Of a stretch of 64,000 nucleotides of DNA, positions 20,676 to 60,030 are shown piece after piece. Below the pieces are notes generated by a model. The model was not told where the DNA came from. It worked only from the letters and a program-made list of their open reading frames with translations, and did no database searches. The first letter of the stretch is position 1. Each line of letters starts with the position of its first letter. Location of the stretch: assembly GCA_965644265.1 (NCBI GenBank), contig OZ286476.1:31062001-31126000 (forward strand), read 5' to 3'. This DNA comes from Glycera tridactyla (Eukaryota). The translations under genes and the position numbers were made by a program.

Positions 20676-21245
20676 TCTTGCGAAATGTACCCGTCATGTT
20701 TGGATCTTGAGTTTACTCTGCCTGAAATCGACTGTTTTGTAGTGATTTGCCGATGTTCGAATATAGAAGTAGTTTCGATAGCTCCAACTGGTCAATCATT
20801 CGAATACTAAAGTCATGTTGGATTACTGTTGTTTCAATGATTCATTGCTATCATGTCCACCTGCATCCGACCAGACTGTTTATTTCGACGTGGGAAGCAT
20901 TGCAACTGACCCCTACATCAGTCCACCCTGTCCTCTTCAGTCACATGCTGGAACAATTGGTGCTCGGATTGAATGGAAAATAATTTATCACGGGAACTGA
21001 ATGTAGCCTTGCACAAGGCAAGTTCTCAGTTTATAATTTTGATTCCACCCCCGAATGTTATTTCCTTGACTTCGCGAAGGAAGTACATAGAAAAGAGGAC
21101 CAGAATCGAAGAATTCCGTCGTGAATTACACGAGTACAAAATATGGTTACTCAAACATTGTTTGAAAGTTTGCATTTTACATTTTTCTAACGTTTCGAGT
21201 TTGAATCTCAAAATCAATACATCACCTGTTTTGATTTGTGTGCAG

Positions 21246-21352
21246 CGAAGCGTAACAGGATTGACGTCACAGAGGCGGGTAACATCGTCACGCCCAACCC
21301 GTACCCAGCAAGTGCGAGGGACGCCTACATCATCGCGGCACCTAGTGGAGAG
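21246..21352 (+). CDS. Secreted 3xCUB protein, coding exon 3 (start of CUB1)
   Basis: TTTGATTTGTGTGCAG| ... GAG|GTAGGT; KRNRIDVTEAGNIVTPNPYPASARDAYIIAAPSGE matches the CUB G.I.SP.YP...I.AP.G pattern. Confidence 0.88.
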
Positions 21353-21408
21353 GTAGGTCAACCTAGTCCCCGAAACCTGTACACTTCATGTATTCCTGCT
21401 TTTACACA

Positions 21409-21500
21409 TGATAATAATAATGATGATGATGATAATGTGCATTTATATAGCGCCTTTTCCTCAGAGCTCAAGGGCACTTTACATATGCATGTAGGCCTAT
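21409..21500 (-). mobile_element. L2/CR1-type LINE- or SINE-derived 3' tail
   Basis: Minus strand AAAGTGCCCTTGAG..GGCGCTATATAAATGCACATTATCATCATC, a typical L2-related 3' end with trinucleotide tail. Confidence 0.55.
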
Positions 21501-22915
21501 CTGAAAGAAAGAAAAAGTGAACCGAGACCTGAGATAGTGTGGTCAAGGTGGGATGCAGGAATGAACGAGTATGTCTTGATTCTGGACTTGAGGATGTTGA
21601 TAGAAGATGCAGTTTGATTTCCAGAGGGAGAGAATTGTATATAAAACAAAGCATAAAATGTAGCTATATTGACCTACTGACCAACCTGTCTCGTGACCTA
21701 CTGAGCAAAAGGCTCATTTATCTAGCACGGACCTGAATACTTCTGGGAATCTCACCATGTTGTTTCCTGTCTTAGCACGGGCAGGTTGTTCATGCAGGCG
21801 GACTCCGGTGGGAACATTTGTTCCACATCCGTCGTGTCGCCGCCATGTTTGGACATCTACCTGCATTATATATTATTTACCTAGGATTGAGCTTTGGAAA
21901 GGAAATAGGGCAGTTTTGATCAATTCATCCATCTACTGTTGAAACCATCATACTACCACCTGTAGGAGTTCCCCGTCTTATGTTCATACAGTCAGTTGTC
22001 CTAAGCATGAAGTCACGGGAGGTTGACAAAATGTGTGCTTAGGGCATGTTCATGCTCAGAACAGGTCAATTATAGTGAAACATATTCTGGCGGGATAAAG
22101 AAAATCCAGTTTCTTAGGGCAAGTTGTAGCTTACTACAAGTCTTGTTAGGAAAAGTTTGACTGTATATAGATCAGATGTTCAGGGTTTGTGAGTGATGCC
22201 TGCAGAGACTTTCAATAGATCAGAAATGCATGGAATGCATAATCTTCGGGTGGATATACTCGACACTGCAACCATTTAACTCCTGTCCTTATATCGGAGA
22301 GAAACGATAAATTGCCCTCGGACAAACTCAAATCAGATTTCAAAGAATAAATCCCATGAGCTTTGAAGACCGTTTTCAGCAAGTTCATACAGGAAATTAA
22401 TTAGGTCTTTCCAAACAGTCCGATTTCTCTCGCATATCAGAATAGAGGACATGCCTGCCCAGTGCATGCAGACTAGGAAATAAAGGCTGGTCGTTCGTTG
22501 TGCTGCATGCAAGTAAAAAAAGCCGACTTGTTTTTCAAGTAGGGGGAAGTTTTCTGGTAGTGGAGTGCTTTCATTGGCTAATTATGATATATTTCCGGTA
22601 TTACTACACAATACTTCTGGAATGCAATAACTTGTCTAATTTCTGATAGAAATCCTATTGTACAATCGAATTGCTCATTACAATGTGGTGTAGAGTACAT
22701 TATCTTGTATGATTGCATACAGGTATTCTTACTTCATGGATATCTTAAGTTAAAATGCTCCACGATACACCATTGCAATGTACAAATTACATTTTTCCAG
22801 CAATCATTGCTACGCTTTGAGGAAGAAACATTGCTATAAGGCTTGAGTGTCAGCTTCCAGCCAGATATATATAAACCTAGGATGCCATATTAACTATATA
22901 TGTCCGGTAGGTAGA

Positions 22916-23085
22916 GGTGTATGAACTGTCAGTTACTTCCACTTGACAACCAGGTTCCCCATCATTTTGTTCAGGGTTTGTGAGTGATGTCTGCAGGAGA
23001 GAGAACATCTAGCTTTCATTAATCAGAAACACATAGCAAACATAACGTCAGGGTTGATACATGCCGTTAGATCTCAAACAAACAC
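22916..23085 (+). mobile_element. SINE family A copy (partial copy also ~22158-22250)
   Basis: GAACTGTCAGTTACTTCCACTTGACAAC..CAGGGTTTGTGAGTGATGTCTGCAGG..GCCGTTAGATCTCAAACAAAC. Confidence 0.8.
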
Positions 23086-23244
23086 AAATTCAGCAATTAT
23101 CCGCTTTCTTGTCGATTTGAACTTATCTCCAGCATGGCTCTAACCGCCCCTAGCCTGTGAGGAAGCAATCTGTCTTGTATGCTATGGGAACGAGGTTAAG
23201 TGATTATTCGATGCAATTCAACAGCACACGATTACCTATTTCAG

Positions 23245-23480
23245 ACGGTGACTTTGACGTTGAACGAGTTTGACCTGGTGTCGACGCCGAACTGTGAGGA
23301 CGATGCGGTGTACATCTACGACGGGCCGACGTTCCGGGACCCGCTGTTGGCCGGACCTCTGTGCGGACCGCTCGCCGAGCTTGACCAAGCCCGCTTCGTC
23401 TCCACCGGCAACGAGATACTGATCTGGTTCCGTTGTGAAACCAACCCCACCAACGAACGTGGATTCAATATCACTGTCGC
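23245..23480 (+). CDS. Secreted 3xCUB protein, coding exon 4 (CUB1)
   Basis: CCTATTTCAG| TVTLTLNEFDLVSTPNCEDDAVYIYDGP...LCG...STGNEILIWFRCE...GFNITV(A) GC|GTGAGT; clear CUB motif. Confidence 0.92.
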
Positions 23481-24612
23481 GTGAGTAAAAGTAGGCCCAA
23501 ATCGCTGTTGCGTGAGTAAAAGTAGGCCCAGATCACTGTCGCGTGAGTAAAAGTAGGCCCAGATCACTGTCGCGTGAGTAAAAGTAGGCCCAGATCACTG
23601 TCGCGTGAGTAAAAGTAGGCCCAGATCACTGTCGCGTGAGTAAAAGTAGGCCCAGATCACTGTCGCGTGAGTAAAAGTAAGCCCAGATTACTGTTGCATG
23701 AGTAAAAGTAGACCCAGATCACTGTCGCGTGAGTAAAAGTGGGCCCAGATCACTGTCGCATGAGTAAAAGTAGGCCCACATCACTGTCGCATGAGTAAAA
23801 GTAGGCCCAGATCAATGTCGCGTGAGTAAAAGTAGGCCCAGATCACTGTCGCGTGAGTAAGTGGTCCCAGATCACTGTCGCGTGAGTAAAAGTGGGCCCA
23901 GATCACTGTCGCGTGAGTAAAAGTGGGCCCAGATCACTGTCGCGTGAGTAAAAGTGGGCCCAGATCACTGTCGCGTGAGTAAAAGTGGGCCCAGATCACT
24001 GTCGCGTGAGTAAAAGTGGGCTCAGATCACTGTCGCGTGAGTAGAAGTGGGCTCAGATCACTGTCGCGTGAGTAAAAGTGGGCTCAGATCACTGTCGCGT
24101 GAGTAAAAGTGGGCTCAGATCACTGTCGCGTGAGTAAAAGTGGGCTCAGATCACTGTCGCGTGAGTAAAAGTGGGCTCAGATCACTGTCGCGTGAGTAAA
24201 AGTGGGCTCAGATCACTGTCGCGTGAGTAAAAGTGGGCTCAGATCACTGTCGCGTGAGTAAAAGTGGGCTCAGATCACTGTCGCGTGAGTAAAAGTGGGC
24301 TCAGATCACTGTCGCGTGAGTAAAAGTGGGCTCAGATCACTGTTGCGTGAGTAAAAGTGGGCTCAGATCACTGTTGCGTGAGTAAAAGTGGGCTCAGATC
24401 ACTGTTGCGTGAGTAAAAGTGGGCTCAGATCACTGTTGCGTGAGTAAAAGTGGGCTCAGATCACTGTTGCGTGAGTAAAAGTGGGCTCAGATCACTGTTG
24501 CGTGAGTAAAAGTGGGCTCAGATCACTGTCGCGTGAGTAAAAGTGGGCTCAGATCACTGTCGCGTGAGTAAAAGTGGGCTCAGATCACTGTCGCGTAAGT
24601 AAAATTAGGCTC
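23481..24612 (+). repeat. 31-bp minisatellite, 36 units (GTGAGTAAAAGTAGGCCCAGATCACTGTCGC)
   Basis: Direct tandem units from 23481 to the last donor-like site at 24595 (1114 = 36x31 - 2; one unit lacks 2 nt). Confidence 0.97.
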
Positions 24613-25275
24613 ACTAAAGTCGTCGATGCAGAAATGAATATTGGAGGTACAGATAAGAGCACGTTACGATACATACCGATGAAATGGGATATGGTAAACT
24701 GTATTTCAATTGATTGAACGCTTCATGAGCTCAGATACCAGATGTTATACAGTCACCAGGATAGCTTGGTAACCGTTGCTATGGCAACGAATGCCGGGCA
24801 GATAATCAATTTCAGGACATTTTGGTATGGCACAGTACCATCTTTCGATCATTTGGCTAAAACTAGTCCACGATGTTTCAAATCGACCTCGATCTTCATG
24901 CACGCCGACTGGGATATCAAAGGCCGGCGTTGTGTTTATAGGTCATATAAAATTATGCACATAAGAACTTCACATATTTTATTATCTGCAGGAATTAGCA
25001 GTATTCATACAAATATGGAGTGTGCATGCTAACCCAGTGCATGCCGACTAGGATATCATAAGGCTGGCAGTTTGTGATTCGTCCCGTATGTGTGGTAAAA
25101 ACCACACGTGTCTTGCAAACAGCAGACACGTCCCCCACGCCTACCCCCCCCCCCCCAACACACCCCCACCCCCCCCCCCCCCCGCCGTCAACGGTGCGTC
25201 CTTTCTTCAGTGGTCCTTCCAAGGTCGATCATATCGTACGGGAAAATGCTGAAGACCAACATTTCTCTCTTCCAG

Positions 25276-25465
25276 GTTCTCCGGTTCGTCGAATGTGTCA
25301 CCCTCGGAGTCGAATGAACAGGGAACTTCCGCTGAACAGGGAACATCGAATGCGATAGCCTATGGACAGGGAACATCGGACGTGACTCCGTATGGACAGC
25401 TATTCATCTCCCCCGACGGTGCGAACCTGGATGTCAACTACCTCATCACAGCGCCAGCAGATAAC
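25276..25465 (+). CDS. Secreted 3xCUB protein, coding exon 5 (S/T/G-rich linker + start of CUB2)
   Basis: TTTCTCTCTTCCAG| phase 2; FSGSSNVSPSESNEQGTSAEQGTSNAIAYGQGTSDVTPYGQLFISPDGANLDVNYLITAPADN|GTAGGT, phase 0. Confidence 0.88.
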
Positions 25466-26200
25466 GTAGGTGGTCTCGGAAGTTCTGTCATGGGATCTTG
25501 TCACTGCCGTGCCCGGTCTCTGCCACCAGCCTGGGTTAAACCCGCCTGGGCTGCCCTGGGTTGGCCTTGTCAATATCATTTGTAATTTTGTCAGTAATAA
25601 CGATATAATTTGGGTAGAGGATCACAATATCATGTTTCATGTAGAATTGATTCACACAAATGTGAGAAAAGTGACCATATTGCCAAGTTGTTAACAAGCA
25701 TAACGTGCACTTTTAGGCAAGTTCTTGAGATACCCGAAATCAAGGTAACCCTTTCACTCAACACTCTAGCGTGAGACCTCTCCGTGATGAACGACACTTC
25801 TCTCGGGTTTCTTTCTACCTTATGTAAGGTTCTCCAGTGATGCACCTATTGAATTCCTTCACAAAGACTGGTGTCGATTCCATCTTCAATCATATCAACT
25901 TGGGATCAGCTGGCCTTTGAATATTTGGCCAGCATAGAGCCCTGGCATGTCTGTCCTTCACAATGAGCTGTGTGTAAGTATGCACACGTTTTTGTGCATT
26001 TGTGCCTTGGATTGCTTAGAATAAAATCTGCAGTCAGTGTTAGTATGCATGTTGTGATACAGGGCCAGTCGAGCTTCGGTGTCATCGACACTCTGGTTTC
26101 TAACTTCTGGTTTTCAAATTCATTGGAATCTCACCTATTGCTAACCAAGGTTGATCTGGTTGCGTGGATGGCGGATTAAATGGGATAATCTTGATTGTAG

Positions 26201-26438
26201 GTAATCCAGATGGAGATTCATAGCCTGCAGATTCAGGACACGGATGGTTGTACGGCGGACAGACTGCTGGTGTATGAGGGAAACAGTGATGAGGCGCCAC
26301 TCCGCGCCACCCTGTGCGGCTCCATCACCAGCACCAACCTGCTCTCTACGGGCAATCAATTCTACGTCAACTACGTCACCAATGACGACGACGTCACCTC
26401 CTCCTTCGCCTTCGATATCGTCTACCACCCTGCCGCAT
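26201..26438 (+). CDS. Secreted 3xCUB protein, coding exon 6 (CUB2)
   Basis: TTGATTGTAG| VIQMEIHSLQIQDTDGCTADRLLVYEG...LCGS...STGNQFYVNYVTND...FAFDIVYHPAA T|GTGAGT, phase 1; alternative in-frame acceptor at 26210. Confidence 0.9.
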
Positions 26439-26559
26439 GTGAGTATTCACGTAAAAATGTCGATGTCGTGGTTCATTTGTAAAGTCGGGTGAACTTGCTA
26501 AGGATACCAATTACGTTTCTTGGCAGGTCTGTTCTAGCTTGACTTTCTCATCTCCTTGG

Positions 26560-26790
26560 AGAGTATAAAACCACAGAGTTAGCTGCAAGCACTCAAGAAT
26601 CCCCATAACCGCCCATATACTGAGTACCAATGCACACCTGGGTGAAGTGGATGTGGGGAGTACAGAGGTCCCACTCAGTTACCTCCACACAGAAGTGCCG
26701 CCTGATTGAGTAGCGCAGATCATACATATCCGTGGGATGGTGTAGGTCTGATATGGCATGGGGCACCTTTGTGAAAGTGAATATCTGCTG
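26560..26790 (-). mobile_element. SINE family B partial copy
   Basis: CACACCTGGGTGAAGTGG..GTACAGAGGTCCCACTCAGTTACC..CACACAGAAG homologous to 7555-7680. Confidence 0.65.
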
Positions 26791-27153
26791 GGGACTGACC
26801 ATCTAGATCTTCGAATTTAGCGCTCTCCCGAATTCCGCGAAGAGTGAAAAGTCCAAACTCACTCAACCGATGTGAGAGTGTAAATTTCTCAGTTTGATCA
26901 GAAAGTTTGATTTTTTGTGAGGACAGAACACTGTTTTGACTCCTTCAACAAATAATTCTCTTAAAGATGACTTTGCATATACCTGCACATGTTTGATTCT
27001 GAAGAAGGTCCTGAGCAAGAAATGGTTTGCTATTCCGAAGATAGTCACTGAAATGACGGATAAGTTGGAATTCACGTCATGACCAGCCATTCTCTCACAC
27101 TAATGTCTCTCTCTGGAGAAATCCTACTTTGAGCTTGTTTTCGAACAAATTCA

Positions 27154-27558
27154 GGAGAGTGAGATTATATTCTGGAGAGTGAGATTATATTCTGGAGAGT
27201 GAGATTATATTCTGGAGAGTGAGATTATATTCTGGAGAGTGAGATTATATTCTGGAGAGTGAGATTATATTCTGGAGTGAGATTATATTCTGGAGTGAGA
27301 TTATGTTCTGGAGAGTGAGATTATGTTCCGGAGAGTGAAATTATGTTCCGTAGAGTGAAATTATGTTCCGTAGAGTGAAATTATGTTCCGTAGAGTGAAA
27401 TTATGTTCCGGAGAGTGAAATTATGTTCCGGAGAGTGAAATTATGTTCCGGAGAGTGAAATTATGTTCCGGAGAGTGAAATTATGTTCCGGAGAGTGAAA
27501 TTATGTTCCGGAGAGTGAAATTATGTTCCGGAGAGTGAAATTATGTTCCGGAGAGTGA
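27154..27558. repeat. 20-bp minisatellite, ~20 units (GGAGAGTGAGATTATATTCT grading to GGAGAGTGAAATTATGTTCC)
   Basis: Period 20 visible line to line; two units shortened by 2 nt near 27280-27300. Confidence 0.95.
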
Positions 27559-27639
27559 TTTCTCGAGTCTGCTTTTCCGACAGGCGAGTGAATGAAAGTA
27601 GTTCGTAAAGACGGTCTTATCTTTGTTACTCGATTACAG

Positions 27640-27823
27640 TGCTGGAATGTCCGAGCCTGCTGTCGGTGATGTCCAACTCAACCCTCCTGTCCCCTGGCTA
27701 CGAAGAGGGCATTTATGGTGACAACCTCAACTGTCTGTGGCGGTTGAAGGCACCGACCGGTAAAAATCTGCAACTGAGAATCGTGGAACTGGACATCGAG
27801 GGCTCGGAGGAAAACACATGCAT
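27640..27823 (+). CDS. Secreted 3xCUB protein, coding exon 7 (CUB3 N-half)
   Basis: GATTACAG| LECPSLLSVMSNSTLLSPGYEEGIYGDNLNCLWRLKAPTGKNLQLRIVELDIEGSEENTC AT|GTACGT, phase 1 to 2. Confidence 0.92.
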
Positions 27824-28156
27824 GTACGTTTTTTTTTTGTGGAAATGTTATTCTCAAAAAGCATTGATGAACCTATTACATGCTTGGAGGGCAATCAGAA
27901 ATAAGAATATATGTACAACATCAACATATATATATATAGATTAGATTTATAATGGTAAGCGCGCTTTCACCTATATACCACCAGAATTAATTCCCAAGTT
28001 ACTATTTTTATCCCGTGACATTTTCATAAACTTCATCAAATCCAAATGTGGTGGGGTACGTTTCACGCGATAAGATTCCCATTTCTCGTCTGACCTGAGT
28101 TTTAATGGCACGAATGTATTATATGTCTGCCGGCGTTCATCAAATTTGATACTCTA

Positions 28157-59500: not shown

Positions 59501-60030
59501 AAATATCGATTCAGAAGAGTAGGGTATCTTGATGATCACAGTAGCCAATTGTTTGGTCATGTCTTTGTATGCGATAACGGTTCAGAAGAGTAGAGTATCT
59601 TTATGGTCACAGTAGCCAATTGTTTGGTGATGTCTTTGTATGAAATATCGATTCAGAAGAGTAGGGTATCTTGATGATCACAGTAGCCAATTGTTTGGTC
59701 ATGTCTTTGTATGCGATAACGGTTCAGAAGAGTAGAGTATCTTTATGGTCACAGTAGCCAATTGTTTGGTGATGTCTTTGTATGAAATATCGGTTCAGAA
59801 GAATAGGGTATCTTAATGATCACAGCAGCCAATTTCAGGGTGATGTCCTTGTATGAGATAATGGTTCAGATGAGTAGGGTATCTTAATGATCACAGCAGC
59901 CAATTTCAGGGTGATGTCCTACTATGAGATAATGGTTCAAAAGAGTAGGGTATCTTCATGATCCCAGCAGCCAATTTCAGGGTGATGTCCTTGTATGAGA
60001 TAAAGATTTAGAAGTAGAGTATCTTTTGAT
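56552..60030. repeat. 71-bp satellite array, 49 monomers, with 142-bp dimer higher-order structure
   Basis: First monomer at 56552, last at 59960 (48x71 exactly). Interior alternates ..GGTCATGTCTTTGTATGCGATAACGG.. and ..GGTGATGTCTTTGTATGAAATATCGA.. Confidence 0.98.

Follow-up and report, generated by a model that had tools for sequence, protein, structure and literature searches.

A minisatellite repeating the exon-intron junction of a multi-CUB-domain gene in Glycera tridactyla

The CUB gene and the array at the end of exon 4

We analysed a stretch of 64,000 nucleotides of the Glycera tridactyla genome (hereafter the window), whose forward strand carries a multi-CUB-domain gene with exon boundaries placed from the sequence and not from cDNA. 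Exons were searched singly and are numbered 3 to 7, which are provisional labels taken over from an earlier reader of this DNA. Exon 3 (21246..21352) encodes the first half of the first CUB domain (CUB1), lies between an acceptor ...gtgcag and a donor gtaggt and runs in phase into position 23245; alone it is too short for a Pfam match. Exon 4 (23245..23480, 236 nt, phase 2 end) encodes the second half of CUB1 and is bordered by an acceptor tttcag at 23244 and a donor gtgagt at 23481. In the stop-free stretch up to 23481, residues 1-77 of 78 match Pfam CUB (PF00431, E 1.3e-8) over profile positions 38-109 of 110. Since the profile match reaches the end of the domain at the end of the stretch, the exon ends where the CUB domain ends. 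The presumed authentic 5' splice site, CGC/GTGAGT (23478..23486, forward strand), closes the exon (...GTCGC/GTGAGT at 23480/23481), and its G+1 falls in a CpG.

Exon 5 (25276..25465) encodes a Ser/Gly-rich linker and the first half of CUB2 between an acceptor ctcttccag and a donor gtaggt at 25466. Within this exon a 30-bp coding repeat (25336-25399, 2.1 copies) repeats a Gln-Gly-Thr-Ser...Tyr-Gly linker motif before CUB2. Exon 6 (26201..26438), again bordered by splice sites, encodes the second half of CUB2 (Pfam CUB, E 9.3e-10), and exon 7 (27640..27822, acceptor gattacag, 3' end approximate) encodes the first half of CUB3 (Pfam CUB, E 4.4e-6). Joining the donor at 23480 to the acceptor at 25276 keeps the frame, the first base at 25276 completing the split codon. 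From 21246 to 27640 onward the five exons show canonical splice sites, and their phases are coherent only with the first donor of exon 4; the gene therefore looks intact. Pfam searches with single short exons (35-65 aa) mostly gave no match. A word search with the exon 4 peptide found no annotated protein, a full phmmer search retrieved distant multi-CUB proteins only (28-42% identity, none collinear with the exons of the window), and no close paralogue of exon 4 was found.

Exon 4 ends inside a minisatellite (23470..24613, forward strand), for which Tandem Repeats Finder gives a period of 31, 37.0 copies, 96% matches, 0% indels and a score of 1917. Cut at the unit start, the array yields 37 units, as many as the junction copies that the earlier note had counted; unit 13 has 29 bp and the other 36 have 31 bp. 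The first unit consists of the last 11 nt of exon 4 and the 20 nt with which the intron begins. Each unit thus repeats, as had been described, the exon end followed by a donor, and 36 of the donor motifs are spare. The motif is GTGAGT in 33 units, ATGAGT in three (units 8, 10 and 11, with first intron bases 23698, 23760 and 23791) and GTAAGT at 24595 in the last unit; the three ATGAGT copies and the final GTAAGT had been seen before. Of the exon 11-mer, ATCACTGTCGC, there are 28 exact copies, all of them in the array, and 25 are followed by GTGAGT. The trinucleotide CAG, to which the earlier note had also pointed, stands directly before 34 of the units.

When two mismatches at most were allowed, a 28-nt pattern of the unit matched the 2.04-Gb genome at 35 places, all within the array; the reversed pattern, which served as control, matched nowhere. 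A DNA search of the 207 contigs with four array units matched this locus alone. As both kinds of matches are confined to the array, it is locus-specific and no mobile element; it is real in the assembly and far beyond chance. An origin as part of a transposon or as a dispersed satellite was rejected on the same grounds. A coding repeat was likewise rejected: TGA and TAA occur in the unit, whose length of 31 bp is not divisible by 3, and neither strand of the array has an ORF of at least 50 aa. No Rfam family was found in 21000-28000.

The next-but-one intron of the CUB gene contains a further minisatellite (27150-27558, 20-bp unit, 20.6 copies). It is wholly intronic and spans no junction, its end lying about 80 nt upstream of the exon 7 acceptor; together with the junction array, two of the CUB-gene introns seen here carry arrays. 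Downstream of the gene lie several arrays of 59-71-bp units (53352-55104) and a 71/142-bp satellite of about 49 units and 3.5 kb (56549-60030).

Repeated donors and internal history of the array

Translation beyond the first donor runs into GCG TGA (stop at 23482-23484), as the earlier note had stated. Because this TGA directly follows the exon, every later donor brings in an in-frame stop, whatever the length added. The first donor is thus the only one that leaves the frame open. In predicted strength the intact donors hardly differ. The authentic site and all GTGAGT units alike have a predicted U1 duplex of -7.4 kcal/mol, and the terminal GTAAGT has one of -7.3 kcal/mol; for the three ATGAGT units it is -4.2 kcal/mol. 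The predicted probability that the 9-nt donor is unpaired is about 0.001 both for the first site and for the median decoy, and RNA structure was therefore rejected as a feature discriminating the first donor from the decoys. As U1 pairing and local RNA accessibility are alike, position alone would have to favour the first donor.

Internally, the array is made up of parts of different age, all on the forward strand. Units 1-13 (23470..23870) form an old, degenerate part, to which all three ATGAGT units and the 29-bp unit belong and which shows a mean of 2.3 differences between neighbours. Units 14-36 (23871..24583) form a young, homogenised part with a mean of 0.23 neighbour differences, composed in order of four G/CC units, eleven G/CT units, six units of a TGTTGC variant and two further G/CT units. 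The terminal unit (24584..24613), with its GTAAGT donor at 24595, is diverged and adjoins unique intron sequence, so that both end units of the array are diverged. Since units 14-36 are near-identical and the exon-proximal units 1-13 are degenerate, recent growth of the array took place in the distal two thirds, away from the exon. The earlier note had described the variants as polarised along the array and had concluded that it expanded from the exon end. The gradient from A/CC through G/CC to G/CT is real; the proposed direction of expansion does not hold, the young units being distal.

Several of the sporadic changes are CpG transitions, namely C>T in column 9 and G>A in column 12, the latter accounting for the loss of GT in three units. 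Such changes fit neutral decay driven by methylation better than selection acting on the decoys. Identical runs beside degenerate units, together with diverged ends, would be consistent with turnover, as seen in one haplotype. By analogy, the variation of the array resembles the neutral decay and local homogenisation of the repeats termed mirages in amphioxus (PMC3087553).

Minisatellites and further junction arrays in the genome

Twenty 10-kb stretches (L022-L041) at fixed positions on three other contigs served as a sample of the genome, in which arrays with a period of 10 or more and no fewer than 4 copies were counted. These 200 kb contain 31 minisatellites, one per 6.5 kb, which occupy 8.9% of the bases and have a median period of 23 bp. 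The genome is very rich in minisatellites.

Among the sampled arrays we looked for those whose first unit holds a donor-like motif preceded by an open frame. A second clear case was found on contig C29, where the last 14 nt of a P450 exon and the donor region form a 19-bp unit present in 26 copies (L036:9354-9851). The feature as a whole spans L036:9242-9851 (C29:5009242-5009851), its 42-codon exon ending at L036:9367 with AAG/GTGAGC. Since the next exon downstream (L043:3681-3971) encodes the P450 I-helix (Pfam p450, E 9.9e-16), the host is a real gene. A plausible third case lies on the reverse strand of contig C42 (L029:5368-7245; C42:5005368-5007245), with 23 copies of a 78-bp unit behind ...CACG/GTAAGT. 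Its putative exon is an open stretch of 36 codons that has an acceptor-like tttcag; it encodes Tyr-x-x-Val motifs and gave no Pfam match.

If approximately 1.75e5 donor junctions are assumed and units average about 49 bp, random seeding would place about 0.35% of arrays across a donor. Among 31 arrays 0.11 would be expected to do so; one or two were observed. This is suggestive of an enrichment of splice junctions as array seeds and is not proof of it. Even without enrichment, approximately 3e5 arrays should give hundreds of junction-spanning ones.

Counting repeated donors genome-wide gave about 7,900 occurrences per strand of three GTAAGT spaced 14-44 nt, against about 120,000 in the reversed control, dispersed satellites dominating both. 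A dispersed 21-bp satellite with GTAAGT in its unit, present at several loci and in both orientations (C1:5076695-5078401, 7366128-7367081 and 7613011-7613438), swamps such simple counts. At C1:7938904-7939236, units of about 30 bp end in ...CCAG followed by GTAAGTAC, which is a repeated near-consensus donor; judged by its units, this may be another junction-seeded array. Apart from repeats, the mitochondrial contig (L017:1501-2841; C207:1838-3178) encodes COX1 (Pfam E 3.1e-125), and as its reading frame contains 12 TGA codons, TGA is a sense codon in this mitochondrion. An HSP70 ORF of the genome matched animals from many phyla, with identities of no more than 86%.

Known junction-spanning minisatellites and interpretation of the CUB array

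Minisatellites with an exon-intron boundary in the first unit are known from the human genes F7, CBS, IFI6, LMNB2 and PDGFA (PMC1557585) and, as mirages, from amphioxus. The arrangement, which the earlier note had treated as new, thus belongs to a class already described. The repeat in intron 7 of F7 has a 37-bp unit and 5-9 units (Borensztajn et al. 2006, PMC1557585). In its remarks on the other genes, the same paper gives an authentic site and 25 pseudo-sites for intron 2 of IFI6 (6-16), a 31-bp VNTR of 15-20 repeats for intron 13 of CBS, 10-15 units of 100 bp for LMNB2 and 16-18 units of 81 bp for intron 4 of PDGFA. According to this paper, the authentic donor alone is used in F7, LMNB2 and PDGFA, and the two nearest pseudo-sites are used constitutively besides the authentic donor in IFI6 and CBS. 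Tests with 50 F7 constructs showed that the pseudo-sites can function but lose in every case to the functional site lying farthest upstream, and even pseudo-sites with higher U1 complementarity failed to compete (PMC1557585). In vitro, the intron-proximal one of competing strong donors is sometimes favoured, according to the debate as summarised in PMC1557585. In amphioxus, tandem duplications of boundaries in Adh3, troponin C, globin and PGBD5 leave splicing undisturbed and are unstable in length (PMC3087553, PMC3902484). Inner units of amphioxus mirage clusters are homogenised with the boundary units excluded, and one mirage was mis-assembled in the draft genome (PMC3087553). Moreover, at thousands of loci in humans an association between tandem-repeat length and splicing is documented (PMC10078293), and a VNTR in ABCA7 is stated there to affect exon skipping (citing De Roeck 2018). 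The precedents with splicing data are all chordate.

The CUB array shows these features of the class: a head-to-tail array of units of minisatellite size (about 10-150 bp), a first unit that holds the predicted exon-intron boundary, a splice site repeated in the intron, and a locus-specific sequence whose source is the host gene itself, no mobile element being involved. It is a further case of a described repeat type, and as a single locus it is ordinary. As in F7, the first monomer spans the boundary, identical pseudo-donors follow the authentic donor, the unit length is similar, and use of a pseudo-site would lead to non-functional transcripts. F7 is a vertebrate gene with 5-9 units and 4 exonic nt per unit, whereas the invertebrate CUB gene has 37 units with 11 exonic nt each; some F7 pseudo-sites keep the frame, whereas every decoy of the CUB array meets an immediate stop. 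CBS and IFI6 also carry junction-spanning arrays, with 15-20 and 26 repeated donors, respectively. The 31-bp unit common to CBS and the CUB array is a coincidence; there is no sequence relationship. Donor use in F7 was established by experiment, and in CBS and IFI6 two pseudo-sites are used constitutively; for the CUB array it is predicted from the sequence.

Amphioxus offers boundary duplications in invertebrate genes, with diverged boundary units and several affected genes per genome as here; concerted evolution of inner units and length instability are further features of its mirages. The CUB array differs in its genome and in a copy number above that of the globin BflGb6/9 cases (3-6). Mirages include acceptor-side cases and units of 150-160 bp, whereas the CUB array is donor-side and has a short unit. 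Like the VNTR of ABCA7, the CUB array is a tandem repeat within an intron close to a splice site, and in both, splicing might in principle depend on repeat length. For ABCA7, the presumed mode of action is binding of splicing factors and exon skipping and not donor repetition, and it is there that an association of length with splicing was shown.

We consider it likely that the CUB array is a tolerated by-product of the mirage type, with the first donor being used and the decoys leaving with the intron. A 31-bp seed duplication would by chance have straddled the 5' splice site of the CUB exon, and replication slippage and unequal exchange in a minisatellite-prone genome would have amplified this seed to 37 intronic units. 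We infer that the spliceosome picks the donor at 23480/23481. This donor would win by its position directly after the exon, as the first one downstream of the 3' splice site of the exon, be it by exon definition or by 5'-to-3' scanning. The 36 copies behind it would be removed as ordinary intron sequence; the array would lengthen the intron by 1.1 kb and would be no purpose-built regulator. Against this reading stand the like U1 pairing and accessibility of the donors, the preference for intron-proximal donors sometimes seen in vitro and the restriction of the splicing precedents to chordates. Leakage to a downstream donor would produce a stop-containing transcript, which would be expected to be degraded.

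How far such leakage may go is the point at which another reading departs. A fraction of the transcripts could be spliced from the 33 intact downstream donors, most likely from the nearest ones, and the TGA would then lead to NMD or to a CUB1-only protein, with array length and the integrity of the decoys setting a heritable output, as on the rheostat proposed in the earlier note. The GTGAGT decoys are predicted to be as strong as the authentic donor, and every one of them is out of frame or stop-bearing. Some leakage is made plausible by IFI6 and CBS, in which, by the account in PMC1557585, the first two pseudo-sites are used constitutively, and the human associations of repeat length with splicing, like the exon skipping in ABCA7 (PMC10078293), point in the same direction. 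However, the spare sites are silent in F7, LMNB2, PDGFA and the amphioxus cases, and since this holds for most of the cases studied, the default expectation by analogy would be that no rheostat operates. Known leakage is limited to the first one or two decoys, so that it would not scale with array length. The three decoys without GT agree better with CpG decay than with selection, and the occurrence of like arrays in unrelated genes of this genome argues for mutation bias rather than locus-specific design. Taken together, we regard this reading of leaky decoys as unlikely. A bolder proposal would extend it to many genes: splice junctions would be preferred seeds of minisatellites in this genome, and leaky stop-bearing decoys coupled to NMD would turn array length into a fast-mutating heritable dial, the CUB gene being one instance. 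This we hold to be doubtful indeed.

The array might instead act at the RNA level apart from donor choice. Its 34 motifs able to form a 7-bp U1 duplex within 1.1 kb could, by binding U1 snRNP, curb premature intronic cleavage and polyadenylation or slow the release of the transcript; or the array could mark a short isoform ending in ...NITVA, either intron-retaining or intronically polyadenylated. As the stop directly follows the exon, an intron-retaining isoform would encode CUB1 only. Such roles are purely speculative, the region matches no Rfam family, and similar arrays in the genome differ in sequence and host; we consider them very improbable. Similarly improbable is an error of repeat assembly in the length or the very existence of the array. 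Tandem repeats are error-prone in assemblies, as the mis-assembled amphioxus mirage illustrates (PMC3087553), but collapse or stutter would not create ordered variant blocks, a 29-bp unit and diverged ends. Moreover, at only 1.1 kb the array could be covered by a single long read, the assembly reaches chromosome scale (207 contigs), and similar arrays recur at other sites in the genome.

With 36 spare stop-bearing donors, the CUB array is one of the largest natural set-ups described for the question of which 5' splice site wins; for comparison, IFI6 has 25 pseudo-sites, CBS 15-20 repeats and F7 4-8 pseudo-sites. It is found outside vertebrates, the group from which the scanning rule was derived. 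Clean use of the first donor, which we consider likely, would extend this rule to a distant animal; if leakage is true, the locus would be a natural NMD-coupled VNTR. A genome with many such arrays could serve to gauge how often junction-seeded repeats arise, how much they inflate introns and at what cost.
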